DNA from: Thalia democratica | Taxonomy: Eukaryota | Length of the DNA stretch: 64,000 nucleotides | Reading direction: 5' to 3' | NCBI GenBank assembly: GCA_965202585.1 | Contig: OZ241831.1 | Coordinates: 25,978,001 to 26,042,000 of the forward strand | In this document: positions 368 to 59,902 of the stretch, in pieces | How the letters are laid out: each line of letters starts with the position of its first letter | How positions within the stretch are numbered: position 1 is the first letter of the stretch | Notes under the pieces: generated by a model | Seen by the model: only the letters and a program-made list of their open reading frames with translations | Databases searched by the model: none | Told to the model about the DNA's origin: nothing | Position numbers and translations under genes: made by a program

Positions 368-3300
368 ATGACTGAGTTAAATGAAAACTTTCCGGAAAAC
401 TCTTCAGAAAGCTCTCCTTTGCCCAGTTCTTCAACTTTCAATGAAGCCATCAATGTGACAGAGAACTCATCTCAACAAACAACCAATGCAGATTCCACTC
501 AAAAGCGCTCAACTCGATCGCAATCTAGGTACCAAAAACGACTAGAACAAAATGAAGAAGACGACAAAAAGTGGGAAGGTCCTCCCTGGAAAAACTTACC
601 ACATGTAGCGCTTGTCAATGTGTTTAAGTTTTTACCCGAAGATGATCGTTTAGAAGCGCAGTTTGTTTGCAGACGTTGGTATGATCTAATCAGAAACACA
701 CCTTGTATTTGGCGGGTAAAATATTTCAAGTTTTCCGGTCGTAACAAAAGAGATTTAACTCATTCACCATATAGATTCGCGACGCACTTCATAAAAAACT
801 TTGGCCACTTTATCAAAAAACTTGAATTTCGTTTGTACAGTCCTATTTCGTCGAGTGTTTGTAAAAAGTTTCAAAAGTCAATAAAAGTTTCTCTAAATCA
901 GCTAACAAAGGTCGAATGCAAATTAGAAGAACTTTCTTTGCCTCTCCTCCAGCTTGATAGATCTCATTGGGCGCAGCACCGAGAAGAAATGTGCAGTTCT
1001 TTAGCTAAGTTTTTCAAAAACAGCAAAGGAAGCCTACAAAGAGTTTACCTTAGGGGAGCCAGAGTAAACGAAGATGAAGGCTTTAACATTCTAAATTCCC
1101 TTGGGTGCAACGCGGGAAATACAGTTGATCAATTAGACATTGAAGACTTTTACAACTGTGGACGTCCTGTTTATCAGCAAACAAAGTTTAGCAGTTGTTT
1201 TAAATATTTTAATCGACTGTATGAGCTCGACATTAACTACAGCTACATATCAAACAAGCTTCTAGATACTCTCTCGGACAGTCTCAAGTTTGGTAGTTTG
1301 AAGTATATGTACATCAAAGTTAGCCCGCACGAAGAAAGATGTCAGCTTATCAGGCCGCAATCGTGGCGAAGATTGAAAGACGAGTGTCCAAAACTAAAAG
1401 TAAAATTGATGTTCTTGCGTGTTATGACTTACAGCGACCATTATAGAATTCTTTGCCCTGAAATACCATTAAACCAGGTAATGAAAACTAAGCTGTAGAA
1501 AATATTTTTTTTTGCTTTTAAATAAGTTTCGTGCAAAATGTAATTAAATTACAACAGTTGCTTAAAAAATACATTAAAGTTACTTTGGCAAATTAGGGGA
1601 AAATGTTAATACGTCAGGTCTATTAGCTTTATCAAACTAGAGACTTGTCCGATAAGTTTTGTCTTGAAATATCGTTAAATCAACTTTTAACGCACACGGT
1701 AAAAGATAGCAAAAGCACGTAGGAATATAACCTCACTGAAAAATAGCTTTAACTGCTTTTAACAACAAAAAATCAATAAAAAGAATTGTTTATGACTAAT
1801 AAAGTTGTTTGTCTGAACTAAAAAATATTGTTGTAATGTTAATAGCTTATTTAAATAATAGTATTAGTGCAAGTTAAATATTTTCTTCACAACCAGGTTT
1901 TGGATGTAAAATATTTATAGATAAGCAACATTATCAACTGCAACTTACTACTTTATTGTACTTGACAAAATCGTAATTTTTTTACTAACGAAACCTGGTA
2001 GTGAATAAAATTTACACTTATATTATTATGTAATTATAATAACATTATTTTTATAATATTATACGTTTATAACAAAAAATTATAGCTACTTTTATCTGTT
2101 TGAAAAGTTGATGTTTTGTCAATAAACGTATATTAAACTTGTGTCTTACTACTTAATAAATACTATTTATTAACACTTTTTAGTTTTTGTATTGCATATT
2201 CTTTGTTGGTTTGCTACATATAGTATTCTTAAGAGATAAAAAGTTATTTTACGGAAGACACAAACAGTTTCAAAATCCAATAAAAACATTTTTTATTGAT
2301 ATCTCAATTAAAACTGATAAAATTATCAAACTCTTGGTAATTGAGAAAAATTATAAAATTCTAATATATAAACTCTTAATTACTAAGAAAGAATCGGACA
2401 AAAAAAGAAAAAAAAGTTTTAAATTGTTTTTGTTTATTACTATGAGCTTATAATGCTAAATATCTGCAAAAAGTTTCAAACGTTTATACATTCTGTATAA
2501 AAGTTTACTTTGGACAAGGTTCAAATTATCTTATTTTTATAAAATGAACAGTTCATTATTATTCTTATATGTTTGTTTCTAGTAGCAAGTATTGCATTTG
2601 GAACCAAGTTGCATAAAATACAGTGGTTATTTAGATTTTATTATTCATCTGACTTTAAATAAAACAACAGCATACAAAAACTTACTGTAAATGTGGTTTC
2701 AATTTTTTTTTGATAATAAAACGAAACTACTTAAACTTAAAAATCGTTTAATATAGTTTATCTGTAAGTATTATAAGTATTTAGATGAGGTATAACTATT
2801 AAAAATAGAAATTTAAATGTTTTCTAATAAAGATCTTAGCGAAACAAGTTCACTAGAATATATAATAAATACAAATTTAAACAGCACTCTTTCTTTATTA
2901 CACTAACACAAGTTTCTGTGTGTTAACATGTTAACACACTTCAACGGAGCTATGAAGTTTAAGAAATACTGTTATGAGGTATATCTAGATTTATTTAATT
3001 TTTGATAAAGGTTACTTTTGATGGGTGTTACTATGCGGATAGGGACTGGCAGATTTGTCCAACAATTACGAGTTTGCTCCCAAACTTCAAAGAAACGCTT
3101 GAAAGATTATACCTTGGTTGGTTTAAACTATATTTTACTTATTGTAGCTTCACGTAGTTATAGATCACAAGTACAATATTATGACAAAATCTTAAAAATA
3201 TGTTGACCTATTAATACAGTTTTAAGAACTAATCTAATTTAATACTGTTACTTTACGTTATTCATAAATTTAATTTCTTAAAAATTAAATTCAAAAAATT

Positions 3301-6300
3301 ACTAAAAATTCAATTGTTACTAACATATTAAGTTAAGAAAAACTTAAATAGAGCAATGTTTAATAAACGAGTTTAATAACTATTTAAATACAAAACTCCA
3401 ATTTATTATGACAACCTTTCTTTATTAAAAGCATTTAGGTTTTTTTTGTTATTTCTAATTATTTTGAAATGTTTTTTACACTGTTTACATTTCGATAATA
3501 AAGATACTTTTATAGAGTGTAAAGTTCACATTCTCTATTAATTGGTTAGAAAAGTTTTAAGCACACAGTTTAGTTTGTACAACATAAGTATGCTATGCAA
3601 AAAACAACTATCTAAAATTTTATATACTTAACATAGAAAATAAGGCTTAACAGTTTTTTTGTTTCAATAATGTAAGAAATCTAAAGTTCATGTCCAGTAG
3701 TTAAGTATAATAAACTAGTGTTAAGTATTTTGAATCGTACATAAGTCAAACTTTATTTTAAGGTTTATGTATTTCTAATTTTTCAACAGAAATACAACAG
3801 TCTAGTCTTTTGTCAAAGTAATTTACTCGCTCTAGCTTTTTAAACTACGCAGTATAGTCAAAAGTAGTTTTGCCATGTTGATTAAACAATACGTAAAACT
3901 AGTTGAGTTGCATATATATTCTCGTTACACTTAGCTAAAAGTTTTATCAGGTTATGATTATCTGTAAAAAGTTTTTAGTTAAGTTTTAAATTTAGTTAAG
4001 TTATTCATTGTAATTGTAATTTTAACCGGCATTTAATTTTTGTCAGCAATGTTTTTATTATTTCAAGTAACCAAAGTTATGATTAAAAGTTATAACTGTA
4101 GCAAAACCATAAACCTTCTGGTTTACTTATTTTTATAATAGTCTGGTCAATCGTAATAAATAATGTGAATAAATTTCAACAAAACAAGTGCTCTTAATCA
4201 ATATTTATGTTGCATTTGTTTATTTTTAAATACTTTTGTAACAAATATGATTTTATTCAAGTACACAATTGGTTTCCACTTATTAATGTTTTCTAGAGTA
4301 AACTCTGATTTTGCAAACACTATATACCTTATTATAAAATCTTAGTTAACCAAAAAACGATAATTGAAAAGTATGCTTATATTTAAAACGATACCTTCGT
4401 TTTCATAAAAAAACAACAAATCTAAAAACTAAAAATAGGTTATAAATATATTTTCTAAATCAATGTAATGTTGAAGAGTTTAGTTGTAATTAGAACTATC
4501 ATTTTATTATTCACCTAAAATATAAAAATATTAGATTTGAACACAGATCTACCTGACACCAGAGAAAGGTTTGAAAAAGAATTGCTAAGTTTTATTTCAA
4601 GTTGCAGTAAGCTGACTGACATCAAAGTAAATGCTTTTATCACAACAAAATTCTTAGAGAACCTGCTTCAGTTAAAGGAAGACGGAAAATGCAGCTACAA
4701 ATACTTAAAGGTAACAAAAAATTAAAACTATATAGTTTTTAAGATGATAAGTTTAAAAATGTTCAAAAAAAATCAAACTTTTTTAAAATGCTAATAAGGA
4801 ATATTTAAATTTAAGTAAAAAGTGTATAATTGAAATGAAAAAAACATATTTACAATTCAGATAATTTATTATAGTCTTTTAGTAAATTGTTAAAAACCTA
4901 AATTGCTACCAAAATTTTGAATAAAAGCTTTGCAAAGTTTTTATTCATAAATATATCCAAAACAGATTCATTGCTTCACACATTTTTAATGATAAGAAAA
5001 TTTCTTTAAACAAATACTAAAGTATACTTTTAAGACATAGTCTTTGGTGTTTATCAAAGAGATAAAGATAATTAAAACAAAAGTTATACTAAGTTTATTG
5101 CTTTACAAGTGTTTCTCGCAAACGCGATGGTCACAAGCAAGTAAACTGAAAGTATCAATGGATAAACACTTCATATAGTTTTAGCTAGGTAATTAGATAA
5201 TTAAGTGAATTTAAATGAATTTAAGTAAAAATAATTAAAATTAACATAAAATACAACAATAACAAAAATACAATAGATAGAAGCAAAATTACAAAGTATC
5301 TAATAAAAACAATAGTAGGTGAATTAAACTTAGATCTAAATAATCGCTAACCAGGGTGTTCAACTTATACAAAGTTAGGGGCCTGGTTTATAACGAAACG
5401 TGCGCTTCAACTTGTATAAGCGATATCCCTTAGATAACAATTGAACTATAGTTGATGTTAGACTAATATGACTTACTTACTATTTACTAAAGGTTTTATA
5501 GATAAATTACTTATACTACTGTTAAACGTAATTCGAGTCTGTGGTGATTAAATGTATTTACAATGAAATTGCGAAACGAAAAGATTATAAAATACTGTAA
5601 AACATAAAACAAATAAATCGAATTATTAATTCTTTTAAAAGACTAAAATACAAGAATCAAAGAAGCTGAAAACTAAGTGGTCGTTCAAACTAAACTCATA
5701 AAGCAATATAAAAGCGAACTAAATTCGATTAAACAAGATCGAAACCATTCACAATTAAATGCAGCGAAAAGTCGTAATGGGCTAAAGCTAACTGCGACGC
5801 AGCAAAAACTAAAAAGTCATTCTCAAACGCGTTCGTTAAATTTATAGGAAGCTTGAGAGAAGAGAAGAAAAGAAATAAGATGACACTTACCCCTATAGCG
5901 GTACAAAACAATTAAGATCTCAAATTAAATTTGGTGAAATGTCTACATTTTCTAACTAACTCTGATCTCAGATTTCAAGTTGTTATCTGCAAATTCAATT
6001 TCAAGTCTCTCCAAATTGCAGAGAGTGCAAATTTTTCCTTGTCTATTTTGATTTGTACAATGAACAATCTCCAATTTGATTATATTTTTCCAATTGATGT
6101 TATCTTTTTTGATTTTGTGGATGAACATACTTAATCTTGTACTTTCCTTTATTAAATAGATGCTCTCTGTGTGTTTAAATCAAGAAGTAAAACAAGAGTT
6201 CATGTTCTAAAATGCATAATCATTTTTTTATTAAAAATGACTAAAATACACTTAACTTTACTAAGAAAGTCAAAATTATATTGTAACACCATTACTTTTG

Positions 6301-11034: not shown

Positions 11035-14000
11035 ATGATTGACTTTGACTACATTTTATCAAAAATAAATCCTCTTGGACCTTACCAACTGTTTCTAGTT
11101 ATACTTGTTTATTGGCTTGCCATTCCTTCTCAAATGCACAATGTAGCATCTGTATTTATAGCTGCTAAGGAAGACTTTAGGTATACGATTGTTTTATGTT
11201 TTTTTTTAAACTCAACATGCAGCATAAAGAAGTACTAGAGAATATTTACTTCTATTTGTTTTTTTATAAGTGTTCTATTTTTTTCAAATTTATTTCAAGT
11301 AAAGTATACAAAAGTTTGAAATTTTAGTAGAGTATACAATGTTAAAAATAAAAGTATCCTAGTACCAACTTTTAAACTAATACTTGTTTTTCAAATTAGT
11401 ATTCAAACTTATATAAGCAAAATATACTCTTGCAATACGTTAGCACTTACATTACAAAATTCGTAGTAATATTTTATCATTACGCATGAGTTTGATAAAG
11501 TAGTACTCATCCTAAAACAAAAAATTTTTAATTTGACTAAAACAACAATTTTCTTAGACATTTTTAAACAATAACTATTTATTCAATACAACCAATGTAA
11601 AAATAATAGAAAAAAAGGAAGCTTTTTGAAATACTAAAAATACAATTAGGATTCATACTGCGTATAGTAACAAAAATAGAAAGTAGAACAATAAATTGAT
11701 GTTTTAAACTGTTTTATCTCCTAATTTATAATCGGTAAAGATACTAACTTGATTACTTGTTTAATTTTAGTTAAAAACTTGTTGTACATGAAAATTTATT
11801 ACAACTGATTCCAGCCGTGTATCTATTCAGAAATAACAACAACGTAAAAGAAGTCATTGAAAATATTGAATAAAACCTTCCTGTTGTGCATTTATAATTT
11901 TTTGCAAATTTATAGCATAATTATGCACATTGTAACTGTAAAGTAAAAAAGTAGTTAATGTGGTTAATACAACAACTTAATGGCAACAATATTTTTTTAA
12001 ATCTTGACATTTTCATCATAAAAAAAAATTAAAGACATCGATAAAAGCAGTTAGAATTTTTTTAAATATTAAGAAATAGTTATTGTGTTATTTTTCACTC
12101 GTAAGTTAAAAACTTTGTTTTTAAAACAGTTTTAACTCTATTTCACTTCACAAGCAAATAATGTCTTTTTATTTTATTTAAATTGCTTGTAAAAACAGAC
12201 CACAAAATATTAACCTTTTACTGACAAATTTTTAACATCTTGAAACTATAGCCTTAGCCTGTAAGAGCTTGTGTTCTAGTAAATTTTGTGATGAAATCAA
12301 ATATTATTTTCGAGTCATTATTTACTAACTTAAGACATCTAAAAAATTAGAACGGGTAAAATATGCATGAAAACACTTTGGTTCGAAGGGTCAAATATGC
12401 ACAAAGGGACACTTTTGCACGAAGACACTTTTACAAAAAGATATTTCTTCATTAAGACACTTTTGCACGAAAGTAAAAAATAAATAAATAATAATTTTGA
12501 AAATAATTCATAAAAACAAATTAGTAAAAAACACAAAAAAACAAAAATAAGTTACCGACCGTGGGTAAGGGTTAGGGGTAACAGTGATAGTGAAAATAAA
12601 GTATAAAAATAACTAATAATATAAAAATATATATATATATAACAATAATTAAAAAAATAAAAATGAAGAAGAAAAAAATAGTTACCGACCGAGGGTAAGG
12701 GTTAGGGGTAAAAGTGATAGCAAATTAAAATAAATGAAACATTTAAATAAACAAAAATAAGAATATTAAATAAAATGTTCAACCCGTGCAAAAGTGATCC
12801 TTCGTGCAAAATTTTCTTTGTAGAAAAGTGACCCTACGCGCAAATTTGACGCCGTGCAAAAAAGTTTTTTGTGCAAAAGTGTCCCTTCGTGCATATTTGA
12901 CACCAACCCCTAAAAACTAATCTTAAGATCATAAGTTTTATTTTTTCTTGTAACTTTTACCTATTAGCAAAAAACTTAAAAGTAGGTAGAACTTATAGAT
13001 AAAATAATGTAAAATGCATACAACAATTGGGTGTGCAATTTTTTTTTTGTATTTTTACAGCAACATTAACAAAAATTTCTCTACTAACAACATCTATAAT
13101 ATTACATCTCTATGTTATAAAAAGAAATTAACCTAAACAGTTTCAAAAACTTAACAACTTTATCTAATCTTAAGTAGAATATGTTTTTTTGTCTAAAAGA
13201 TACAACCTCCGCTTATATGTGGTCTAAATAGTTACAAGTATACTTTAGAAACATACCTAGAATGAAAACGAACGTATTTTCAACCTTTTTTGCTTTGTCG
13301 TGAAAAGACTCTGTTTTAGAAAACATGCACATGCATAAAAACGTACTTAAAAAGACTCATACGTATTCAATGTAAGAACTATTACAAGTCGGTTCTGTCA
13401 AAAATTAACATTATGTAATTTACAAAGCAGTTGTCTCATCTGAGAAAAATAAAGATATGTCATATATTGGATCCCCTCAAAGACCTTTCAAGAACAGATT
13501 ATACGAACATCGAACACCATTTCCTAAACCCAATAAAGAGAGGTCAATCAACTGCACACAACTCGCCAACTACATATGAAAATTGTATGAAAAAGACAAA
13601 AAATACACAATTAAATGGAATGTTAGGCAAATCAACAGAAAAAAAACAAACTTCATGTGCTCATTACGCAACCTAGAAAGATTATACACAGCAAATGTTA
13701 ACAAAAGAAAATCCTGAATAACAGAAATGAACTGGTTACACAGTGTCCTCATTACCCTAGGGAATACTTTTAGTTAATTTTTTTAGTCAAATTTATTTTT
13801 TGTTTCATGTCTTATTGCATTTACTTAGTTTATTTTATTTATTATTTTGTAATATCTATTTTTGTATTGTGTATATGTTTTTGCCTTGACTTACAACCTT
13901 TTTATAATTTTTTTTTTCTTTTTCTAAATCCCCTATAAAATTATTATTTTTTCATTTTTTCAAAGCTTAGTATATAAAAAAAAGTTATACGAACTAATTT

Positions 14001-17000
14001 TATTTTTCTTTATTATTATGGATTTAGGTAACGTATACTTAACAGAATACTAATATTAATAACAACCTATGTTTAACTTAATTTTTATCAACATCATCTT
14101 AATAGTAAGTCAAATTATAAAATTAATTTTATTTTTATTTCTATGTCTATTCTTATTTTAATTATTCACTTTGTACTTTTGTTTTTCAGCTTTTGTTTGT
14201 GTCTGATGAACTGCTCTGCAGGGAAACGGCGTAACGCAATAAAAGTTAAACAACAAATTAGTGTAATGATTAACATTTGTGATTTTGACTTCAAGTAAAA
14301 ATACACTTTAAAAAAAAAAAAAAGACATTTTGTGTTTAGTTTTCAAATAGAGACGGCTACTTTATAAAGTAAAAATTTATTTTATAAAATCTATTGAACT
14401 ATAGAACCTTAACAGTCTACATTACAGCATGCAGGAAACATATTTATTCTTATATTAATTTTTTCTATCACTGCATGGTTAGCATTTTGATTATTCTACT
14501 TCGTTAATAGAATAAAGTTTACAATAACAACAAAAGATACCTAGAAAAACTGTTGAGAGTTTTGTTAAACAGAGTAATTTAAACAACTAATAGAAATCTA
14601 AGTATGTTTTATTACAATTTAAACAATTTTTTGTTAGTATGTGTAAAACTATTAACATATTTGAATCGTTATCATAATAAATAGATATCAAAAGGTTTGC
14701 TAAAAAACTAACAATAATCTAATCAAAAATTTTTTTGTATGATAAAATTAAGAGTTTTAAAATTATCTATATCAACTTTTTAAATTGTTTTAACTACTTT
14801 AATGTACACCAAAAAATTTAGATTGTAAACAAACATATAAACAGTAGTTTTATTAACTAAATATTGAGAAAACACTGTAAAAAAGTTTTACAAATATTTG
14901 TTAATTTATTAGAAAACTAGTTAAATTTTAAAGTTAAGTGAGACTTAAATTTGCTACAACCGATGAAACACGTAGTACGTAGTACTTTCTTAAGTATTCA
15001 ATTAAGATACTACGAGCTAAAATGTATTTATAAATTGTATACACTTTCTTTCCGTACTGTTAAGTGTTACGTAACAGAAACTAGTTCACTTAAATTATTT
15101 TTCTTTAGCAAACACTTTTTTTAGCTGCAATGTGCCTCCTTTAGATAATAAGGAAGTATTTCCAAGCTTAACGGAGGAGGATATTCTTAATTACACAACG
15201 CCTTATGTTAATGGAATGTATGACGGATGTTTTAGGTTAGTTAGATTTTTTAATACTTAGAATTTGAAATGTTATTATAAAAAAAATTCCGTGTGTGTTT
15301 TGTTTTTTATTACGAACGTAATATAAAGATGTAAGTTAGAGCTTTATGTTTGAAGATTTGTTAACTAGTCTTACCTACAAAAAAACTGTATTTAATCTTT
15401 TCAAAATATTTTTTTAGATAAACTAAGTCGTAAAAGAGTAAATAAAATTTTAGGTAGACATACAGATTAAAATCCTAAAACAACTGTATAACAACAAATA
15501 AGGTATATTTTCTGACGTTAAAACTAGTAAAAAATCTGTTTTCAGTTTTATTTAGTGTCTACTAATAAAAACACTAGGTAGGTATTTTTCAACTAGGCAA
15601 GACTGAGCTATAGACGATTGTAAGCAACTTGGCATAGTTTAGTTTTTTTAAGTCTTGCGGTTATACATGCAATGGTTTCTTATAGTTATTTCGATATGCG
15701 ACTCGTCTAAATAAGTTTTTATTGTTGAAATAAAATGTTTTAGAACCGCTAGATTTAAAGAAACTTTATTTTCAACAAATTTTTTATAGAAATATTTACA
15801 CCTGGCTGTGAAATTGCAGCTAAATTGCAATTATGCTATCTAGATTCCGACAAAGAACTATATTGGTTAATAAACTAAACAGTCCATTTTGAACTTAATT
15901 AACGTTAAATATTTTTGTTCTTGATTCAAATTATTTGAAAAATCAGCTTTACTTTAATAATGTTTTAAACACTAATATAACTTTTTTTTATCGGAATAAA
16001 CAATTTATGTTTATCTAATTTTTGATAGAAATAAGAATGCAAAAAACACTAAGAATATTTTCTTTTTTATAGAAAAAGTTATAGTTTTTGTTATTTTCGT
16101 ACAGTATTTTATGACTTTTAGAATTAACATGATTTAGCTAAAATGTTTAAAATTATTTTATTTCAATTTTTAACTTAATGGTAAGTGTACTGTCAAATAA
16201 AGAATTTAAAGACCTAACTTTACCTTCGATTAAAAATTAAACAATAATGAAAGTTAATGTAATTAAAAACAAAGTAATATTTTTCTTTATGTAAGATAAG
16301 AAAAAACCGAAGCTAAAATTTTAACAAAAACTAGTAATACGTTTTGCTAAAAAAAATGAATTCTACTATGAGGTTTACGTGTAAGCTATGGATCTACATT
16401 TTAGCTTAGATCAGGGGCCGTCAAAGTTCAATCTTAACTAAAATACTTTGAAAATAATAAAAAACTTTTATCTTTTAAGCGATATGTCTATGACAAAAAA
16501 TCATAAATATTTTGAATTAAGCTAGATTCAATTTCTATGAATCAATTTATTTGGGTATTGTTATGACATATTTCCAAAAATTTAATAAAATCCCTATCGT
16601 TAATATAGCTAGAAATAAAAATTAAGTTTGACAATTTTCTTAAAAACTTATCTAAAAAATAGATATGGGTACAATGTTTCTGCTTGCACAAATCTAAACT
16701 GCGTTAACATGAGTGCTAAAACCATTCCTTGCGACAAAGGGTATCATTTTTATTTCGAAACATTTCAATCTACAACTATTTCTGAAGTAAGTAAAATATT
16801 TTTAAGTATTGTATATTTTAGAGCTATTATAAATCAAATTTTTGCTCATAATCAATTTTAATTAGGTTGCATTCTTCATTTGTAAATTTATTACTAATGG
16901 TAAGATTAAACAAAGTAATTTTGTTTAGTTAAGTACACAATGTATCAACTTAGCACGCAATAAACTGGCTACTAGCCGTTGATTATTGCCCTTAAAAAGG

Positions 17001-20000
17001 TAAACTTTTGATCCTTACATGAAATTAACTTAACTTTTGTTTAAAAATGAAAACTAAGCAGATACATATGAAAAGATCATCCTTGCGAAGATTTAAGTTG
17101 TAAAAAAGTATCCTTTATGAAACTCTGATATCTATAAATAAAAACATGCTTGTATAAAAAAATATTTGGTAATCAAACTTTTTATAACCATGAGAAATAT
17201 TGTAAACCGACTTATACATACTTTGTAATGATCATTAACAAAAACTTTCTTAATAAAACAAAAAGAAAAATCAATAAAGATAATGCATAGTTTTCGTAAC
17301 AAACTGCTTATGTTAAAAACACTTGATAAAAACTTTTCAAAATGTAACAAATAATTTAACTCTGTTCTATTTTTAATCTCCAGTAGTTAAAACAACTTAA
17401 TTTTGGCTTTATATCTTTAGTAGTTAAGCCATTTTTATAGTTTAAAAATTGTAATTTTTTAAAACTATAGTGGAACTTAGTCTGTGACAAGAGCATATGG
17501 AGCACTGTTGCAACATCAATTTACTATGCTGGAATTGCATTTGGTGCCATTGTTTGCGGATTTTTAGCTGACAGGTTTAGTTTTTCATATAAAAATTTAA
17601 ACTTAAGTTGTAAAGATTTAATATATCTAAAACAATACATCTGTATTTTTGTTTACTGTTTTTAAAGCAAACCTGCGTTTTTATACTAAAATTCAGAAGC
17701 AGTTTTCTAACAACAAAATCAATTTATTACCTTTTAAATCAATCTTAGCGTACATATGAAGTCTTTTATAAAATCAACCCAATTATCCATTATAACTAAC
17801 TTTTAACAAAAACTGGTTTACGTAATTAGTATGTAGACAACTTGGATTTTTTATCTCTTAGATATGTCATAAAAAGTTATTATTTTCTGGAAATCGAAAC
17901 AAGAAAAACCCGTAAAAAACTAAAAAAAGCTTTTGTACGCAACTACTTTATCAAAATGACAGTATTTCGCTACTAATAAGCATGAACAGTCCTAAAGAGT
18001 CATTTTAGATCACCGTATACATCAAAAAGAAGTATCTAAAATAGTATACAGTTTATATATGTTTATAATATGTAAATAACTAATATAAAACAAACACTGA
18101 TTTTACATACGCTTCAGACTTGATGCTTATGCAAATAATTATACTAACATGTATAAACATACATTTATAATAACAATCGAGATATACTTTATTTTAAACA
18201 CTTATAATATTAATTTATATCTAGTAAGTTCTACTCACAAAATTACAAAGTTGTTCCTAAATTCAAATCTAAATTAATAATGATTAAATTTATTTTTTTT
18301 TTTAGTTTTATAATTATTCATTTTAAATTATATGTTTTAACAACACAACTTGTACATATTTGGAGGTTGTTCATGCCAAAAACTAAATATCTAAACAAGT
18401 TATCATGTAGTTGATCCTTGTTGTCAAACAATCAAAAAATTTCAAAAATTTATGACTCAAAATTTATTACTAATTTAAATAGCAAATAAGATTTTTTTTT
18501 GATATAGTTTTTTTTGAGATAAGATTAATATGTATTTTTTGCATTACAAATCAAAACTAAAATACTCAATAAAGCATCAGAAAAACATCAAAAATTACAA
18601 AACAATATTAACATTTAAAGCTTTTTTGATTGCTATTTAATGTTGAGCTAGGTTTTTGTTTGTTTCCAAATTGTTAAGGATTCAATATTTAAATACTTCT
18701 GTTTATGCAGTTTGTATCTGATTGTAGTGTTAAAAGGGCTTTTCTTAAACATAGTTAGCACGTTTTAGTTTCCATTTTTTTAAACTGTCTTTTTAATATT
18801 TTCCAAGTTAAAATTAAGCTTTTGTTCAATATGTTTGAGTATATGTTCATAGGAGATATGTCTAATACAAAAACACATACACACTGTAAAAAACTATTGC
18901 ATTTTTTTTTCAATGTACGTTAATATTTACAGACTCTGTAAAGCTGTTCATATTTTATGGGCAGCGAAACGCCGTCAATCTTATAAAGTGTTTGTGTATA
19001 ACAACAGTTATTTTGTACTTAAATATATTAGTTCTTCCTTATACAATTAAACACAGTCTTTGAAAACGAGCAAAGTTTTCATGTTTTTTTCAGAAGTCAT
19101 TATATGATTCGTTTGTTTTTAATTTATATTGCTTTATTTTTACAGCTTTTTAAGTTTTAGATATCTGCTTTGCATCGAAACTAGTTAACTAATAAAGCTT
19201 ATAACAGAACAATTGTTTACCTTTTCCTTCGTTACCGAGTTGATATTTTTGATATTTCTGTTTTAGCTAAAGTATGTAAAAGATTTTTAACACATAAACT
19301 TACTAATGTGAGCATAAGTATTTTTTCAATAGTTGAGTGTTGCTTTATATTTACTATAAGTCTGTCGTTAAGTTTATTTATGTAACTGATTAAGATACAA
19401 TACTATCATCATTACTCAAGCTATAAGAAGTCTTAATGTTTTAGTGCAAATTGAAGATTGTTTCTTTTAGTCCTTAGTAGACAAAAATTAACTTTTGAAT
19501 ACAAAAATATGTTATTAAACTTTTGTATCTTGTTTAAAGCAAACTTTTAAAAAGCATTTAAAGCATAACTTTTACTACAATCTAATATGTATTCAAAACT
19601 TTGCATCACAACGGACTATAATTGAATGTTATTTTTGTTTAGTTCATATGTAAGCACTTAAAAATTTAAATAAAAAACCAAGGAGCTTTGTTTTAAAATA
19701 GTTTAAAGGCTTCAAAATTCTATAAATTAGGTACGGTCGACGTTGGACTCTGTTGCTAACAGCCATCGGTGGAACAGTTTGCGGAGTTGCCGTGTCATTT
19801 AGTCCTTGGTTTGAGCTTTTTGTTTTTCTTAGATTTTTAACCGCTGCATTTACTCATGGTGGATATATTGTGCTCTTTGTTTATGGTTAGAATATTGGTA
19901 TAAGTTCCTTTTTGTTTTATTTGTAAATTTTAAATAGCGCTCATTTTTGACAAATATAACAACTTATAAGTTATTTTAATTTATCTCGTATTTATTGTAG

Positions 20001-23000: not shown

Positions 23001-25648
23001 TTTTTTTTCTTTTTGCTATTTTTTTCGACTTAACTTGTTCTTCCAATAATTTAGGTTTTCAACGGCTCTTATATACTACGGTTTTTCATTGAATGCAGGA
23101 AACTTGTCAGGGAACATATTCGTAAATAATGCGTTGAACGGATGCGTTGAAATTGCTGCTTATGTTTTTGTGCAGTTCACTATTAACAGGTTCAAGTCAA
23201 ATAATATTTCAAAAAAATGTTACTTATACTTTAGCTACATATAAGTTATTCTCGTTACTATCAAATTTGTCTCTTATTTTATGTTTAATTGTTACTTCAA
23301 TTATTAAATGTAAATAAAGGCTAGGTAGGAGAGCACTTTTATCATCAATGTTCTTTTTACAAACTGTTTCATGTGTTTCAAGTATTTTGTTGTCGGAATT
23401 GAGTAACGGAAATGAAGGTAAGCACAACTTAAAAAGTGTGTATTAATAAATCAAGTACAAAAGTTTAATTGAATTTTAGCAATTTTGAATGCTTCGAAAG
23501 CTTTTGCAATTATTGGTAAGGCTGCGGTATCAGCTTGTTTTGGAATAGTTTACAATTACACAGCAGAGCTTTTTCCAACTGTAGTAAGGTTTGCTGTTTT
23601 CATAATTTACAATTTTTTTATTCGTTTAAAACAACTAGGGAAATTAGATTTGCGTAAAAGTTTATGTTTATCTCAGACTAGCATAATATTTGTTCTAATC
23701 ATTTAACTACTACACTTAAAATAAAAGTTCAAAGAATGACTTTTGTAAGCTAAAAGAGTTACAAAAATCATCAACAACTTTTCCTTAAAACTTTTTTTCA
23801 GGGCAAACGCAGTCGGTCTTTGTTCACTTACATCACGCATTGGTAATATTTCAGCACCTTATTTACTTTACATACAAGACTACGTTACATGGTTACCATT
23901 TACTATATTTAGTTTGATCGCTTTGGTTGCTGGCTTTTTTAGTTTAATGCTTCCCGAAACAACAGGCAATAATATAATGCGGACCTTAGAAGAAGCAGAA
24001 ACATTTTATACAGAAAGTAAAAAGTAAGTTGAATTTACTCACCAAAAAAAAGTTAGCCTAAGTTAACTAGTTTGAAGCCAAAATTAGTTTACTCGTCAGT
24101 CTTCCAAAATTATAAAGAAAGGTATTTTAAAAACTTTAACAACTTCAAAAATACTTAATTTTTTCTACATTTAGTTTATTTGTAGTTAGAGATAAGTTTT
24201 CTTTTATACTAAATCTAAAGCTATATATTTTATTTTTGTTTTTTACTTCTAAACAATTTTGGCTACTTTTTATCCTGTTGTAAAATCTCATGAAATTTTG
24301 AATGATCGAATAATTTCACAGCTCATTACAAAAATTACATATGTAAAGGATATGATTAAATTTTATTTGAAGCATTTTTCAGAAAGTTTTTGGCTTTTTC
24401 AAAGTTTTAAAATAAGAAAAGAAATTATCTTTAGATAGTATAAAATCTGAGTTACTTAATAGTTAATTTTAAATAAAAGCAGAAATAGTTGTAAAAAAAC
24501 TGTACAGTGTAATATGGAGTAAAAGGGTTTATATATATATATATATATATACAATAAAATAAAAGAAAGGCAGCAACCCTCTCTCCACAATCAAAACATG
24601 TATTTAAAAGAATAAAAACCATTAATCGATAATAAAAAATTACAATAAAATAAAACCAAAAACAAGATCAACCAAAACAAAAAATAAGTTGAATTGTACA
24701 TAAGTAAGTTGTTTTTAAGATAAGCTAACTGAAATTATTCAATTTCATTTGAAACGTCACGATGTGTTTTTTGTGTGATTCTTTGAAAATTTTGCTATGT
24801 ACTTTATTTCGTTCTGAAGATATATGTTAAACATTGAAACTGAGTAAACGATATAAAAACAAGTTTTTTTTTATATAATAAAGATATATATATATAAAAT
24901 AATGTGATTATATAAAATAATTAACCTTCCACAGAACCCACTCGAAGGGCTATTAATAGTTTATTGCGAAAATACGAATTTAAAATACACAAAGTTTAAA
25001 TCAAAATGTAATAGTGATTTATTTGGAGTTTTGTGAATTTTAGTTGTTAATTTAAATGGAGACTAGTTTTTGACTTGAAAATTTGTACTCTACAAAATTT
25101 CATAATTACGTCACACTGTTTTTTTGTATAGCTTTTGTATAAATGTTTATCAAAATGCAATTCATTTCGAATCTAAAGCTGATGATCAAAAAAAAATTTA
25201 TTATTTTTACGAAATATATGTTTTGTTATTTTTAATTCCAATTTTCGTAATAAACTACATATGTATATATATACATATTAAGAAAATTCAAGTAAAACTT
25301 AAAAGAATACTTTATGTTTATTAAATTATTCATTATTGTTTAATCTTATAAACAAGTTTTGTTTTTAAATTATAGTTTATTTTAAACTATTGTTCAGTAA
25401 ACTTTACTTATTTATAAACGATATCTTTTTTTGTCTAGTTAAAAACTATAAGTATTTCAAAAACTGTTGTAATTTTTAAACAAAGATCTTTATTTTTGGC
25501 AACTAATACACTTGTTTTATTAAAGTTTTTGGTACATTTTTCTTAAAAATAATAATTTAGGAATACCAAAAGATCGTTGATAAAAGTTGCAGAGTCTAAA
25601 ACATATGAAAATAAAGTTTGCATCGATGAAACTACGACAAAGTTTTAA
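11035..25648 (+). CDS. SLC22-family (MFS) organic cation/carnitine transporter, Orct-like, 13 coding exons
   Basis: Exons 11035-11180, 15125-15235, 16663-16786, 17471-17574, 19731-19885, 20131-20300, 21113-21244, 22136-22221, 23055-23189, 23320-23417, 23480-23588, 23802-24023 and 25561-25648. Motifs STTISEWNLVCD, ADRYGRR, IPESPRW, RLGRR, YTAELFPTVVR and LPET; C-terminus ...DETTTKF*. If exon 12 reads through unspliced it stops at 24027. Confidence 0.9.
12348..12909. mobile_element. Mutator-like MITE, family A (GGGGACGGGTAAA / GGGTAGGTGTC ends)
   Basis: Imperfect TIRs ggtcaaatatgcacaaagggacacttttgcac / gtgcaaaagtgtcccttcgtgcatatttgacacc. 9-bp TSD ctaaaaaat/ctaaaaact. Internal GGGTAAGGGTTAGGGGTAA repeats. 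Confidence 0.75.
13395..14247 (+). mobile_element. Penelope-like retroelement 3' remnant (GIY-YIG pseudogene, T-rich 3' UTR, hammerhead) in SLC22 intron 1
   Basis: An unlisted frame reads VIYKAVVSSEKNKDMSYIGSPQRPFKNRLYEHR...LANYI*KLYEKDKKYTIKWN...MCSLRNLERL.../LNNRNELVTQCPH, a GIY-YIG domain with a stop codon and a frameshift. Confidence 0.85.
14188..14247 (+). ncRNA. Minimal type I hammerhead ribozyme, canonical C3-G8 core
   Basis: ctttt-g-t-ttgtgt CTGATGA(14203) a-ctgc-tct-gcag-g GAAAC(14223) ggc GTA^acgcaa-t-aaaag. Helix I is 6 bp plus an extension; helix II ctgc/gcag sits on an A.G mismatch. Confidence 0.8.
18926..18987 (+). ncRNA. Decayed hammerhead motif in SLC22 intron 4
   Basis: agact CTGTAAA gctgttcat-atttt-atgggcagc GAAAC gcc GTC^aatct. 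Helix II is 9 bp; the core has two substitutions relative to CUGANGA. Confidence 0.6.
21818..22046. mobile_element. Degenerate Mutator-like MITE, family A
   Basis: Starts gggtaggtgtc and ends tgtgcacttttgacccgtgtcc; no clear TSD. Confidence 0.6.
22306..22405. repeat. Dispersed SINE-like fragment (family also at about 32262-32345, 32470-32545, 49695-49800 and 59665-59765)
   Basis: Shared motifs tgtcct(g/a)gacaagac..ggtatc..ctcgataa(c/g)c..caccaggtcct.ggacc..ttttgagcgcttt, found in both orientations. The SINE class is an inference. Confidence 0.4.
24530..24551. repeat. (TA)n microsatellite
   Basis: About 11 perfect TA units. Confidence 0.9.
24803..24857 (+). ncRNA. Minimal type I hammerhead ribozyme, canonical core, in SLC22 intron 12
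   Basis: tttatttcgtt CTGAAGA(24814) tatatgttaaacatt GAAAC(24836) tga GTA^aacgatataaa. Helix I pairs at 10 of 11 positions; helix II is atgt/acat with an imperfect base. Confidence 0.8.
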
Positions 25649-26050
25649 AGCGTGTATTGACACAACACGTTATTGTACATTACACAACAATTATCTATTT
25701 TATTTAAAAACTTGCTAAGTTTAAGCAACTGCAGTCTATTGCTTTATTGCCAAAGTCATAAGAAAGAATAAAAATTGCTTCAAAAATCTTAAAGTTTAAG
25801 CAGAGCTTTAAATGACATCTTATTTAAACCTTTGTTAGTGGTACTAATAATATTTTTTAAATATTTTTTTTCTTCATGCTTAAAGTTTAGAATTATATTT
25901 TAATTAAGTAAAATTATTTTTTAACTTAAAGTTTTGTTTATTACTATATATCAAGCATTTGTACTTTCAAACTTATTCATATCTTTATAGTGTTTTTTTT
26001 TGTTATTTTGAAGTAATAATACCTTATTTTTTTTAGATATGTTTAGATGC

Positions 26051-26113
26051 TATTTTATTAGTATTTGACAAGGTCAAAAAAATTTCCATTGAAACCAGGT
26101 AATAAATAAAATA
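26051..26113 (+). ncRNA. Hammerhead motif (U3-A8 core) downstream of SLC22
   Basis: tattttatt-ag-tat TTGACAA(26065) ... GAAAC(26091) cag GTA^ata-aataaaata. Same core and helix III as the motif at 1952; helix II is degenerate. Confidence 0.5.
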
Positions 26114-27752
26114 ATTAGTTTGCACTTTTGTTTCTATTTAATAACGTTTCGTAAACAATTTAACATAATGGATAAAGGTATCTAAAGTACTAACAACATA
26201 TAAAGTGAAAAGTTTTACTTCATAAATGCTATTTACAAAATCTTGTAGGAAAGCTGATAAGGATAAACTTAGCCTACGTTGATAGATAAGGTTATATGGA
26301 TAACGAAAATTAAACAACATTAAAAAAAAAAAAAAGAATTCATTCCTACAGTTTTAAAGCGACTCTTTTTAGTCAAATACTTTTTATGCAAAAATTAAAT
26401 GTTTAGCAGCAGTATTTTAATAATTTTTTTGAGAATTATATTTATTTGAAAAAAAAGAAACGTGTACACTTTTTGTTTGCTTTAGTCACAAAAATTTAGT
26501 TTTTTGAATTTCAATACGTTTCAATTTTTTAGTAAAAAACATTTCCTGAAATCTCAAGGTACTTATTTTGAAATCTAAACTAGGAAACGATAATTTTTTT
26601 TAAAGTAATCTAAATTTTTAAGAAATATAACTCTGACACTTTGACCTTTATACGTTTATTTTGAAAAATATCTAAAAACCAACTATATATTGATTGTTAG
26701 TTGAAACTTTTAAATTCTATAAAAAATGTTTATGTTCCATAATTTAGGCTTTCAAAAATAAGCAAATTTAAATAATCTTATACAAACTTACAACTTTAAA
26801 TAAATATTAATTTTAATATTACAGCTGAACTACTCGCACAATATTGTTACTTAGATGTTTACGCCGGCCTTGGCAACTACTGACTATAACGCGCTATTAT
26901 AACAATATCGTTGATAGTTACTTATGCTAAAGTTTAAAATGACTTGCTAATTAACAAAATCGATTTATCAAATGCAAATTTTACTAATCCTGTTATTCTG
27001 ATAGGTTATAAGTGTTGATTAAACCTAAGCTGCTGTTCATTGAGATAGGGTTTTAAACTATTAGATACTTAAAATTAACTAATTGTTTAATAGAAGTCGA
27101 GTCTATAAACTAAAATGTGTATTAACAATGAATAAAAGTGCAAAGAATACAACAAACTGCTAAAAAATAACACAAATCAACTACTTTGACTAAAAACGAT
27201 GGGAAATACATCAATTTTTATCAAGAATATCAATACTCAAATAAATGCAACCCATGGCTGTTAATCGCGACAAAGCTAAAAGCAATTAAAGCCTGTTTAA
27301 AGCGTAGCTTGAGTTTAAATACAAGATAGCTTTCTCGAAAAGGAGAAAATTGCAATAGCTTTACACAGCTACATACATCTTATGCCTACTTAAAAAAAAT
27401 ATTAACTAATATGTTTTGTTACCAATAATCTAGTTTCAAAAAATCATTTTCAAGTAGATATAAGATTTATGAACAAAGCATTTTTAGTTTAGTATAAAAA
27501 AGTGAAAACATACAATATAGTGACGTAACATTCATCTTTAATTTTAAGTAAAAAATAATAACATTTTATACCACTTGAATTATTTTTCTTGAGATAAAGT
27601 AACTTTTTTACGTACTAAAAGAATTTTAAAAGTAAGGTTTAAATAAAAAGGAGTACTCAAATTATTTTGGAAAAATTAAGGTACAAATTTTAATAAACAA
27701 AAATAAGTTTAAGTATACAAAAGAAATTAAAAAGTTTTTTTAGTTTGATTGT

Positions 27753-28154
27753 TTATTTGTAAAAAGGTAGTATTGTTTTGTTTATATTAATTTTAGCTTG
27801 TAGTTTATTTGTCCATTTGCTTTCTAAAAAATCTAGTTCCGTTTGATCTTCTGAGCTGTTCAAAAAAGTTATTGTAAAAGCATTTTCAAATTCTTTAAAT
27901 ATAAATGGATGATTTTTGTTATAATGAAGTTTAAGTGCAGCTCGATCGTTAACCTCATTCTTATCCATGTTTTTCCAATTATATCTATGCGAGCACCACC
28001 TTTGCGAAAAGGATGTTATCGTCTGTCCAACATAATATTCATTACATTCCATGCATTCTGCCGCATAGATCCCACAATTTTTACAATCTAATTTCTTTTT
28101 TAATTTAATTAATTTTTCGGTTTTTAATTTTAAACTATCAGTAATTTTAAACAT
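27753..28154 (-). pseudogene. GIY-YIG endonuclease domain of the Penelope-like element (open frame in the left arm, no RT)
   Basis: GIYAAECMECNEYYVGQTITSFSQRWCSHR...ELDFLESKW..KL..KIN; GIY, YVG, Arg/His and Glu motifs are all present. Confidence 0.85.
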
Positions 28155-29033
28155 TCCTTTATTACCATTTCGAACAACTTAACCCAAACACAATGATCAC
28201 ATATAAACGACCAAACACACTAGCAACGTTACTTATCAATTATAAAATAATTGCTCATCAACCTAATGCTGATAAAAGTATTTCTTACCCATGTGGGAAA
28301 TGTATGCTGTGCGATCGAAATGGTAATAAAGGAATGGTTAAAATCACTGATAGTTTAAAATTAAAAACCGGAAAATTAATTAGATTAAAAAAGAAATTAA
28401 ATTGTAAATATTTTGGGATCTATGCGGCAGAATGCATGGAATGTAATGAATATTATGTTGGACAGACGATAACATCCTTTTCGCAAAGGTGGTGCTCGCA
28501 TAGATATAATTGGAAAACATGGATAAGAATGAGGTTAACGATCGAGCTGCACTTAAACTTCATTATAACAAAAACCATCCAACTATATTTAAGAATTTTA
28601 AAATGCTTTTACAATAACTTTTTTGGACAGCTCAGAAGATCAAACGGAACTAGATTTTTTAGAAAGCAAATGGACAAATAAACTACAAGCTAAAATTAAT
28701 ATAAACAAAACAATACTACCTTTTTACAAATAAACAATCAAACTAAAAAAAATTTTTAATTTCTTTAGTATACTTAAACTTATTTTTGTTTATCAAAATT
28801 TGTACCTTAATCTTTCCAAAATAATTTGAGTACTCCTTTTTATTTTAAGTTTAACCTTACTTTTAAAATTTCTTTTAGTACGTAAAAAAGTTACTTTGTC
28901 TCAAGAAAAATAATTTAAGTGGTATAAAATGTTATTATTTTTTACTTAAAATTAAAGATGAATGTTACGTCACTATATTGTATGTTTTCACTTTTTTATA
29001 CTAAACTAAAAATGCTTTGTTCATAAATCTTAT

Positions 29034-29071
29034 ATCTACTTGAAAATGATTTTTTGAAACTAGTCGTAGAT
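29034..29071 (+). ncRNA. Minimal type I hammerhead ribozyme with U3-A8 core
   Basis: atctac TTGAAAA(29040) tgatttttt GAAAC ta GTC^gtagat. Helix I is a perfect 6 bp, helix III is the palindrome ACTAGT, and there is essentially no helix II. Confidence 0.75.
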
Positions 29072-29878
29072 TTTTTTAAGCAAAAATATTGCAGATTTCT
29101 TTTAAAAATTTTTGAAGTACAACTTCCTAAATAATTAAGTACGATCAAGAAAAAAGAAATCCAATAAAGAAAAGTATACTGTGCTGGAAAGATTTAAGGT
29201 AATTTTAAAATTTATTTGTAATCTGTTACCAATAGTCGAAAGAATTAACAACAATATTATTTGTTAAGTTGAGTTTGCAAGAAAGTAGTTGTACTGCACT
29301 ACTTAACATAGTTATCAAAAGTAGCCTTAAAGATATAAAAGTTCTTAATAAAGTTATAATAAAAACACAAGACAAAAAATTCCTATAAATTATAACGACT
29401 GTGCGAGAGCCTTATTACAATAGTTATTAGTCTTATGTTTTGCAGAATTAAAAACTTTAGATATTTTTTGGTAATTGAACATCAACATACCCAATAACAA
29501 ATGTAATTAATCAGAACTTCTGATTCAAAAGTTAATAACGCTACGATTCTCCTTATTAGCGTCAGTTATAATACTTTAAAAAAATTAGATAAAGATAAAG
29601 TAAGATGTTAAGACTAATTTATCTTATTTATAAATTGGTGATAAAAAACTCAAAAAGTTATACTAATGAAGTAAATACAAGTTTAAAAAACCTTCAAAGA
29701 CAAAAAAAATAATTACTATACTAAAATTTTCATTAGTATAACGACTAAAAAATACTTCAGTGAAGTGTATATTCACTCTTAAGTAAAATATAAACATGTG
29801 TAAAGAATTTTACTATTGTATAAAAAAACCCAAAAAATATATCGTTTATATCAGATATTTATATATCGTTCAAACTTC

Positions 29879-41910: not shown

Positions 41911-43525
41911 TAGTGATGTACCGAACTCACTATCCGGGTCCGGCCGGATATTGCCATTTTTGTCTGATATCCGGATCCGGCCGGATTCTAATTTGAAAAA
42001 AAAGTCCGGTTCCGGCCGGATTCTAATTTGAAAAAAATGTCCGGGTCCGGCCGGATCTCTGTTAGGATCTAGTTAGTAAAAAAGAGCATACTGAAAAGTA
42101 TTTTTTCATAAACAAACCCTGTGCAAATTAATAAGAGTCATTTTCGTCAGTTAAAATTAAACACCTACCGTGATTGGCTCATTTTGTACACGTGACTAAT
42201 TTACATTTGTTTACATTTAAACTATGAATTAAACGTTTCATAAAATGCAACTCTTTACATATGTTGTAAAATTGAAAACTTTAAAATGAATACTTGCATT
42301 ATTTATTGTTTAAAGTTGAGCTCAGAGAATATTTAGAGTTAATACTGTTGAATGTACGAGCCAATGAGAATCATATGATGAAATTTTTCAAACTAAATAT
42401 TGATGTAACAAAACTTCAGAACATGACAGGCAGTTTATATGTAAGCAGTTAGTTAGTTTGGTGTGTAGCTTGAAGCAACAAAATATCTTGAACGTTTTTG
42501 TGAATGCTTATTGTAAGTAGTGTTTTGTTTTAAAATTGAATATTTCAACAGGTGTTTAATTATTTAAATATTTAAGCCAGGTTTATAGTTTATTAAAAAT
42601 TTTGCAGTTTCTTGTTTACAAAAAGTTTTATTTAGTTTTTTGTTTAAAGTCTTTTGATATAGATTTAAGTAGCTTCCAGTTTTTAAAGTGTTACCAAATT
42701 AATTAATAATTTTGTATATGCTAGTATTTCTTCTTGTGTTTTATATAAAAGATTCATCACTCAAAACTGTCAAGTCTGATTATTGAAAGTAGTCTCAGTT
42801 AAAATTTAGTATTTGTTAGATATTAATTAAATAAGGTAGGATTTAATTATGATGGGTAGTACTAATAAGTTAAGTGTACCACAATCAGTCTACAACTTTA
42901 CTACCAAATTGTCAACCTTTGCTAGCTGTTCTACTGATTATTAGATTAAAGTATCTTTTTCAGTTTTTAAAAACCTCATTCTGACTCAGGCTTGTTTATA
43001 CTCACTCTAGCTAGTTTTATTGACTTAAACAGTGACAACCCTGCTAGTTTGAAAATTTTTGGGAATTTTAGAAAATCTTGGACTGCCTCAGGCTAGTTTA
43101 GTTTTTTATAAAAACTCAGGCTAGTTTTATTTTAGATTTTTAATGAGTTTGAGCTGATCCAGTTTTCAATATTTTGTAATTTTCTAGTGTATTTTGTTCA
43201 AGAACATGATTTCAGATTTTATATTGTAAATAACACCTAAATTTGTAAACCTTTTGGCTAGCTGTTCTTCTTATTATTAGATTAAAATTTTATTTTTTTC
43301 AGTTTTTAAAAGCCTCATTCTGACTCAGGCTAGTTTATTCTAGTGATGTACCGGACTAACTATCCGGGTCCGGCCGGATATTGCCATTTTTGTCTGATAT
43401 CCGGATCCGGCCGGATTCTAATTTGAAAAAAAAGTCCGGTTTCGGCCGGACTCTAATTTGAAAAAAAAGTCCGGTTCCGGCCGGATTCTAATTTGAAAAA
43501 AAAGTCCGGGTCCGGTACATCACTA
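41911..43525. mobile_element. hAT-like element with TAGTGATGTACCG TIRs and an internally duplicated left end (43341-43525)
   Basis: tagtgatgtaccg at 41911 and 43341, cggtacatcacta ending at 43525; flanks aaaattat/aaaattac; tandem ccgg(g/t)tccggccggattctaatttgaaaaaaaagt units. Confidence 0.65.
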
Positions 43526-52100: not shown

Positions 52101-52145
52101 CGGAAATACAACATTATAGTGATTAGTTGATGTGATAATCTAAAT

Positions 52146-59100: not shown

Positions 59101-59857
59101 CTTGTAAGAAATTCGCAAATATTTTCTACAATTTTTATAGTTGAAGATGAACATTGATTTTCACAGTAACAAACAGTAAGTTTATAAAATAGTTAAAAGG
59201 TATGAAGTTCAGAAAACAATCAGTCTTAATTAAAAATTGATTTCAAGAAAAAACTAAACGATTTGTTGTCTTATTATATTTTGAAAATACCACAATTGTT
59301 ATGTAGTGACAACATATTATGACATTTATTTTTATCCTTTTAATTAAAGTTTTATAATATTTTAAAAATAAAAACAGATTAAGTTAAAATATAAATTCTT
59401 AGTACACTATACACTTTAGGTCTATTTATTTTCAATTACCAATTGTTTACGTGTTTTTTGTACTTTGGTTTTTTGCGTGCTTTTTGTTTTAATAAATAGT
59501 ATTAAGTTTAATTTTTTTATCTGTTAAATTAACTTTTTCTAAAAAAATTTAAGAATAGTTGAATGTTATAAGTCAGTTTGATAATGTAATAATCAAATTA
59601 AAAATTAACTAAATATACTTAAACTTATGATGATATTACTAAATAATTATGCATAGTAATAGGTTTATGTCCTAGACAAGACATTAAACGGTATCCGTGG
59701 TATGCTCGATAAGCGTAAGGTTCTTCGTGCACCAGGTCCTAGGACCAATAATTTTGAGCGCTTTTTTGTCATTTAATAAACTATATCTTAGTTTCATATT
59801 AATTTTTTGCTTTTAATATTGTTTATATTTGCGGTTCAAGTTTACCTATTTTAATAT

Positions 59858-59902
59858 TGAAGTTCTGATAAACCTTTATTATGTGAAACACTGTTAACTT
59901 CG
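59858..59902 (+). ncRNA. Hammerhead motif with a probable G8A change
   Basis: tgaagtt CTGATAA(59865) acctttattatgt GAAAC(59885) act GTT^aacttcg. Helix I is 7 bp; helix III aca-c-tgt is near-palindromic. Confidence 0.6.

Follow-up and report, generated by a model that had tools for sequence, protein, structure and literature searches.

The 64,000-nucleotide stretch of the Thalia democratica genome analysed here (assembly GCA_965202585.1, contig OZ241831.1, positions 25,978,001 to 26,042,000 of the forward strand; hereafter the window) contains nine motifs with the layout of minimal hammerhead ribozymes. These motifs belong to seven dispersed repeat families, one of them autonomous and six without a coding remnant in the window. 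A minimal type I hammerhead lies near the 3′ end in every family. The tertiary pair between core positions 3 and 8 differs in identity from family to family but remains Watson-Crick. The nine motifs are very probably retroposed fossils of seven Penelope-type families, in which the state of the 3-8 pair was set by the source copies and in which dimeric cleavage would have been followed by insertion through target-primed reverse transcription.

Published work suggests how such fossils would arise. In tandem source copies, two motifs joined at their tiny palindromic helices III would make up a dimeric hammerhead, and this dimer would cut after H17, reducing multimeric transcripts to single units. 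The RNA would then be inserted by the Penelope reverse transcriptase/endonuclease through target-primed reverse transcription, an event expected to leave 5′-truncated, often inverted copies with an optional tail.

Window motifs and their repeat families

In all nine motifs the order is the same: helix I, a 7-nt core, helix II, GAAAC, a short near-palindromic helix III, GUH and the returning strand of helix I. The cores start at 1962(+), 5134(−), 14203(+), 18936(+), 24814(+), 26065(+), 27453(−, truncated), 29040(+) and 59865(+). An earlier note on this DNA had placed hammerhead-like motifs at nine positions, which are motif ends and not core starts, and the layout was confirmed at every one of them. 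The cores it listed are present at seven sites (CUGAUGA, CUGAAGA, UUGACAA twice, UUGAAAA twice and GUGACCA), while those at its positions 18926 (CUGUAAA) and 59858 (CUGAUAA) were unlisted and break the proposed rule. Seven of the nine sites also fit the strict skeleton NTGANNA-N6-30-GAAAC-N1-4-GTH with a helix I, the misfits being the truncated copy at 27430(−) and the motif at 18926. The helix III strings in the window (ACTAGT, ACGGCGT, ACTGAGT, ACCWGGT, ACACTGT, ACACTTGT and ACGCCGT) are as tiny and near-palindromic as had been described; they span 6–8 nt, mostly three pairs flanking one central base, and cannot close as a hairpin, which is also the case for helix III in most of the families. 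All window copies are single insertions and most are mutated, with only those at 14203 and 5134 structurally intact. They are single fossils, and cleavage is not expected of them.

Family consensus sequences were obtained from alignments of 20–30 copies per family (three copies for the 59865 family) in this genome of 802 Mb and 26% GC. All motifs of the window fall into such dispersed families, which bears out the earlier suggestion that several retroelement lineages are represented. The consensus 3-8 pair is C-G in three families (F14, F24 and the ancestor of the 59865 family), U-A in two (F1 and the autonomous element) and G-C in one (F5), so that the U3-A8 and G3-C8 pairs are consensus states and not mutations of single copies. 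In their consensus, F14, F24 and the 59865 family have exactly the canonical core, C3 U4 G5 A6 N7 G8 A9 ... G12 A13 A14 A15.1 ... U16.1 H17, while F1, the autonomous element and F5 have it with a paired swap at 3-8; F18 departs from it. Helices I and II are both present in the consensus of F14, F24, F5, F1 and F18, the autonomous element being the exception, and compensatory changes occur in helix II of F24, helix I of F5 and distal helix II of F1. The proposal that each lineage has its own compensated core is overstated, as it fails for the motif at 18926 (U6), for the decayed window copy at 59865 and for the autonomous element, which has no helix II.

Among the canonical families, F14 has at least 537 candidate copies, a CUGAUGA core, a helix II of CUGC/GCAG flanked by A.G and a helix III of ACGGCGU. 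Its intact window motif lies at 14191..14245 (+), with CUGAUGA at 14203-14209, in an element copy (~13401-14268, +) that ends sharply 23 nt beyond the motif. F24 has at least 551 candidates with a CUGAAGA core, found in the window at 24814-24820 within the motif 24802..24858 (+), and the 3′ end of this element, near 24896, adjoins a (TA)n tract. In one F24 subfamily a U-A pair of helix II has become C-G, a compensatory change, and the window copy has a G-to-A defect in this helix. The low-copy family is represented by a decayed motif at 59853..59907 (+), with a C3.A8 core (CUGAUAA), helix III ACACUGU and helix I GAAGUU/AACUUC. One relative in this three-copy family retains CUGAUGA, and the window core is thus that of a decayed copy.

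The U3-A8 family F1 has at least 374 candidates, with a core of UUGAMAA and a G10.1-C11.1 pair. Its first window motif, at 1950..2012 (+), has UUGACAA at 1962-1968, helix III ACCUGGU and H17 at 2000, and lies in an element copy (~1915-2036, +) with an inverted fragment just upstream. The second, decayed copy (motif 26053..26113, +; UUGACAA at 26065-26071) belongs to an element spanning ~26050-26145. Helix II has decayed in both. Elsewhere, head-to-head inverted F1 copies (L127:146-248) fold as long hairpins that reach Rfam microRNA-precursor scores of up to 63 bits, below gathering; such inverted pairs could yield hairpin RNA.

Because the pattern is loose and the DNA AT-rich, the motifs might be chance matches. 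The skeleton alone gave nine matches in the window compared with 3.7 in dinucleotide shuffles, and with a helix I of at least five pairs it gave five compared with 0.2 expected, a count that none of 300 shuffles reached (global or in 1-kb blocks). On the real sequence, the true motif ranked first among 240 permuted decoy motifs, the best decoy having three matches, and the reversed sequence gave none. The density of motifs with helix I is thus above that of shuffled sequence. A looser descriptor, which kept helix II strict but asked for no more than GAAA and allowed any helix III of 12 nt or less, returned two matches (14203 and 5134) compared with 1.25 in shuffles, and this result, like the silence of Rfam described below, is what a chance origin would predict. 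Since the looser descriptor is at background, the significance of the window motifs rests on the signature of GAAAC with a short helix III together with the family evidence, and the families are decisive. Every site belongs to a repeat family, the consensus of which gives a better hammerhead fold, and the genome-wide counts given in the next section (9481 against 254 and 934 against 1) also speak against chance. We consider a chance origin next to impossible, as it is already refuted by the family alignments.

Identity of the 3-8 pair across the genome

Exact matches to N3-UGA-N-N8-A, a spacer, GAAAC, N2-4 and GUH were counted on both strands of the genome, with the pattern read backwards as control. 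The spacer was 8–16 nt for the C..G, G..C, G..G and C..C patterns and 8–24 nt for the remaining ones. The canonical C..G families yielded 9481 matches (control 254). The generic U..A pattern has a high AT-rich background (8533 matches, control 7852); with a GG...CC helix II there were 934 matches and a single one in the control, from several subfamilies with covarying distal helix II stems (GCAA/UUGC, AGC/GCU and GGC/GCU). The 587 G..C matches (control 406) comprise a young subfamily of F5 (F5y), old F5 and a few of a third type. Single-mutant copies of paired families and local tandem repeats make up the G..G (382, control 217) and C..C (313, control 236) matches, single mutants make up the C..A matches (2589, control 1981), and the U..G matches (2495, control 1949) are single mutants together with an F1-related subfamily with UUGAAGA. 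The A..U pattern showed no excess (2509, control 2504). Its one recurrent family, ATGATTA...GAAAC, was rejected as a register artefact: a shift of the reading by 3 nt turns it into a canonical CUGAUGA hammerhead.

Dedicated dispersed families therefore exist only for paired or wobble states: C-G, U-A (at least 934 strict matches), G-C and one U.G wobble subfamily. No dispersed family with G.G, C.C, C.A or A-U at positions 3 and 8 was found in these whole-genome exact-pattern counts. The U3.G8 subfamily belongs to the F1 lineage (UUGAAGA; L169-L174, for example G000:C1 6050951-6050988) and likely marks the route from C-G to U-A. The earlier note had expected searches for CUGANGA to miss about half of the hammerheads. 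This is true of the window, where only two of the nine motifs match CUGANGA; genome-wide the variants number ~1,300–2,000 against ~9,500 canonical exact matches, or about one in seven, a rough figure given the unequal spacer ranges of the patterns.

The same patterns also detect a 27-bp tandem satellite outside the window (G000:C1:1371907-1374391 and 1631774-1635566; C4:8338806-8420083). Its unit has both hammerhead boxes (CUGAUGA ... GAAAC-GA-GUA) and no obvious helix II, and it appears among the C..G, G..G and C..A matches.

The G3-C8 state is represented in the window by the intact F5 motif at 5092..5146 (−), with GUGACCA at 5134-5128, helix II UCGC/GCGA, helix III ACACUUGU and H17 at 5104, in an element whose 3′ end lies near 5065. 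F5 has at least 185 candidates, 75–83% identical, with a core of GUGAYCA. In its alignment, G3 is present in all 21 copies and C8 in 18 of the 21, and helix II (UCGC/GCGA) carries a GNRA-type loop. F5y is young, nearly uniform and chromosome-wide, with the core GUGAUCA, helix II CGC/GCG and the palindromic ACAAUUGU, and it is homologous to F5 across the whole element. Among the first 100 of the 587 G..C matches listed, roughly half are F5y, about 12 are old F5 and a few are of the third type; about 350 dispersed G3-C8 copies are present genome-wide. Between the consensus motifs of F5 and F5y, 9 of the 55 positions have changed, all of them outside the core. Loops, H17, position 11.1 and distal helix I are affected, as is one helix I pair that changed from G-C to A-U on both strands. 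By our own estimate, nine random changes would spare the 13 core and closing-pair positions with a chance of ~0.07, so that the sparing of the core is no more than suggestive.

Text searches of the literature turned up no G3-C8 hammerhead from nature, although absence is not proven by such searches, and the lineage appears to be new. It is possible, if somewhat less than probable, that the G3-C8 lineage (F5, F5y and perhaps the third type) is a selected, catalytically competent hammerhead with an inverted tertiary pair, and the first natural case of one. If so, this lineage, the U3.G8 subfamily and the U3-A8 families would together put the stepwise exchange of a ribozyme active-site pair on record in a single genome, and would amount to a mutational scan of the hammerhead core carried out by nature.

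Insertion hallmarks and alternative explanations

The motifs at 27430(−) and 29040(+) flank two open reading frames (ORFs) with a GIY-YIG domain, in two 5′-truncated copies of a Penelope-like element joined head to head at 28172/28173. The short arm (27430..28172, −) is 5′-truncated at 28172 and contains a GIY-YIG ORF at 27753-28154 and the core UUGAAAA at 27453-27447. It ends at ...GAAACUAG (27430), 2 nt short of the predicted cleavage site, and this end is unique among 40 scored copies. The long arm (28173..29225, +) contains a GIY-YIG ORF at 28193-28681 and has its element 3′ end near 29225. Its hammerhead-like motif (29028-29077, +) has UUGAAAA at 29040, a perfect 6-bp helix I (AUCUAC/GUAGAU) and the palindrome ACUAGU, and only 9 nt (UGAUUUUUU) occupy the position of helix II. 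From this arrangement, the motif of the autonomous family is probably a crippled ribozyme. Its derivation by a 7-nt deletion from a UUGAUAA-U-GACU...AGUC family was considered and is unsupported, as the two have only ~20 nt in common and no alignment in the flanks.

In copies of the same family, RVT_1 lies upstream of GIY-YIG (RVT_1 in L013 and L015; GIY-YIG in L028 and both window ORFs), and two copies lie in tandem ~4.1 kb apart on contig C9. The order of reverse transcriptase followed by C-terminal GIY-YIG is that of EN+ Penelope elements, and was shown for this family alone among the seven. No Penelope coding remnant was found in the window outside 27756-28730. The earlier inference of autonomous Penelope-like elements, possibly with non-coding derivatives, was thus upheld for one family by its RVT_1 and GIY-YIG domains, while the others, without a coding remnant in the window, bear Penelope hallmarks. 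These non-coding families have a sharp 3′ end 20–40 nt beyond the motif. F14 shows graded 5′ truncation, inverted head-to-head pairs occur in F1, F5y and U-A families, an optional ~33-nt tail is present in 8 of 11 F5y copies, and (TA)n tracts stand beside F24 ends. The Penelope insertion signature of 5′ truncation, partial tandems, an inverted 5′-truncated neighbour copy and an optional tail of 30–40 bp is therefore found here. The RNA data are limited to marine metatranscriptome contigs from one study of 2016, which include relatives of the Penelope element (28173-28832) and of F24 (24705-24860) at 85–99% identity. They suggest that the host lives in the plankton and that transcription is probable; DNA carry-over could also account for them.

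The remaining family, F18, has at least 135 candidates and a window motif at 18924..18988 (+) in which all helices, GAAAC and GUC are present around the core CUGUAAA. Its consensus likewise has helix I, helix II, GAAAC and GUH, and its core, CUGUAGA, has U at the invariant A6. One possibility is that the motifs of F18 and of the autonomous element have been repurposed and, instead of acting as ribozymes, serve as a stable hairpin or as a recognition site near the 3′ end for the reverse transcriptase or endonuclease of the element itself. The F18 core strand CUGURRA pairs with an upstream UUYACAG in 16–23 of 24 copies, with a few double changes, to form a hairpin of 7 bp with a 3-nt loop (window 18924-18942, where the partner is UUUACAG; loci L131-L150). 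This hairpin excludes helix I and would explain U6. In addition, the autonomous element retains helix I, the core boxes and the palindrome with only 9 nt left for helix II, and internal sites close to the 3′ end are where reverse transcription by Penelope elements begins (PMC11167929). On the other hand, the copies are dead insertions, so that the number of copies with the pairing is largely inherited from one or a few source sequences, and protein binding and priming remain putative for these elements. We regard repurposing as improbable.

Another explanation is that the variant cores (U3-A8 and G3-C8) are catalytically dead leftovers carried along by elements for which the ribozyme has become dispensable, their 3-8 pairing being a coincidence or the product of AT-biased drift (C to T together with G to A). 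At 26% GC, a change to U at C3 and to A at G8 would be favoured, and hammerheads are missing from entire Penelope clades (PMC11167929, PMC8557442). AT drift cannot give G3-C8, however, which needs two transversions. This state is fixed in both an old and a young subfamily, with the core untouched and one helix I pair compensated, and engineered G3-C8 is partly active (PMC11167929). Moreover, the U-A families retain G10.1-C11.1 and covarying helix II stems, and the absence of dispersed families with G.G, C.C, C.A or A-U is not what dead cores would predict. That the variants are dead leftovers is thus unlikely, though it has some standing.

Several observations nevertheless weigh against our interpretation of the motifs as fossils of Penelope-type families that cleaved as dimers. 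Two families, F18 with its U6 and the autonomous element with its missing helix II, multiplied with a core or helix predicted to be inactive. In vitro, Penelope insertion does not require cleavage and is not reduced by mutating the ribozyme (PMC11167929). Spread is therefore no proof of an active ribozyme, and both facts also suit dead variants. The variant families were read from dispersed copies and not from tandem source copies. The backwards control of the G..C pattern is high (406), and the case for G3-C8 therefore rests on family composition and not on raw counts. The metatranscriptome contigs end near 29053-29057 and not at the predicted site 29065/29066, although contigs cannot show RNA ends. 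Finally, cmscan with Rfam gave no hammerhead match, either in 13 family loci or in the window, where both the gathering threshold and E values of up to 10 were used. Tandem arrays of 328 bp are present elsewhere in the genome, and only this array type passed Hammerhead_1 (RF00163); the Rfam models fail to capture these minimal motifs. A cross-family MAFFT alignment was unfit for a covariance model of our own, as it placed helix II in differing columns and the F5 GAAAC off by one column. Cofolding gave favourable dimer energies, which are generic for self-complementary RNA, and we gave them no weight.

Other features of the window include an ORF of 376 amino acids with an F-box domain (368-1498; Pfam E 1e-10) and a perfect 45-nt palindrome with arms GGGTTAGGG/CCCTAACCC (29880-29924), ~650 nt beyond the 3′ end of the Penelope copy. 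A GC-rich module of ~90 nt with GGTCCGGCCGGAT palindromes and A-runs occurs twice, 1.43 kb apart (41937-42027 and 43367-43457), and has weak, chance-level Rfam matches to a Bacillus sRNA (small RNA).

Comparison with known hammerheads

Most of what we describe confirms known biology, with modest additions: a G3-C8 lineage in nature, an intermediate subfamily with U.G and two off-consensus families. Dimer-type Penelope hammerheads and U3-A8 covariation were described in publications of 2011–2017, including the U3-A8 variant and the dimer model (PMC4209133, PMC3088659), ~1,300 U3-A8 matches in Schistosoma (PMC4209133) and dimer cleavage via helix III (PMC4209133; Lunse, Weinberg & Breaker 2017, as cited in PMC6765202). 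The G3-C8 and U.G families provide ready constructs for asking how far the 3-8 tertiary pair is exchangeable in vivo, and the spread of the U6 and helix-II-less families bears on whether Penelope elements need their ribozyme. In practical terms, searches restricted to CUGANGA, like the Rfam models, undercount hammerheads in such genomes.

The closest relatives of the motifs are the minimal hammerheads of Penelope elements (Cervera & de la Pena 2014, PMC4209133; Lunse et al. 2017, as cited in PMC6765202). These are likewise type I and located near the element 3′ end or in a pseudo-LTR (long terminal repeat). In them, too, helix III has only 1–3 pairs and a palindromic centre, which implies dimers, A9 is often followed by a base that is unpaired or mismatched, and a genome contains many diverse families. 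Compared with them, this genome adds the G3-C8 lineage, the U3.G8 subfamily and many 7-nt helices III of three pairs and a central base, as well as one family with U6 and an autonomous element without helix II. The hallmarks of the non-coding families match published descriptions of Penelope elements (PMC8557442, PMC11167929).

Natural U3-A8 hammerheads also keep the tertiary Watson-Crick pair through covariation of positions 3 and 8 (Perreault et al. 2011, PMC3088659). That broad survey of bacteria, phages and others reported only U-A as a natural variant, and not G-C. The inverted G3-C8 pair is instead known from the engineered C3G/G8C double mutant (Martick & Scott 2006, as cited in PMC11167929; Frangieh et al. 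2024), in which cleavage is partly restored, including in an Anolis Penelope hammerhead (PMC11167929). Whereas that mutant was made in the laboratory, G3-C8 is fixed here in natural families of hundreds of copies.

Animal non-LTR retrozymes are likewise non-coding hammerhead repeats, and Penelope-like elements are believed to mobilise them (Cervera & de la Pena 2020, PMC7229834; Li et al. 2026 preprint, 10.64898/2026.07.22.740005). Retrozymes consist of tandem short non-coding units that give rise to circular RNA, whereas the window copies are single and dispersed and lack the tandem repetition by which retrozymes are recognised.

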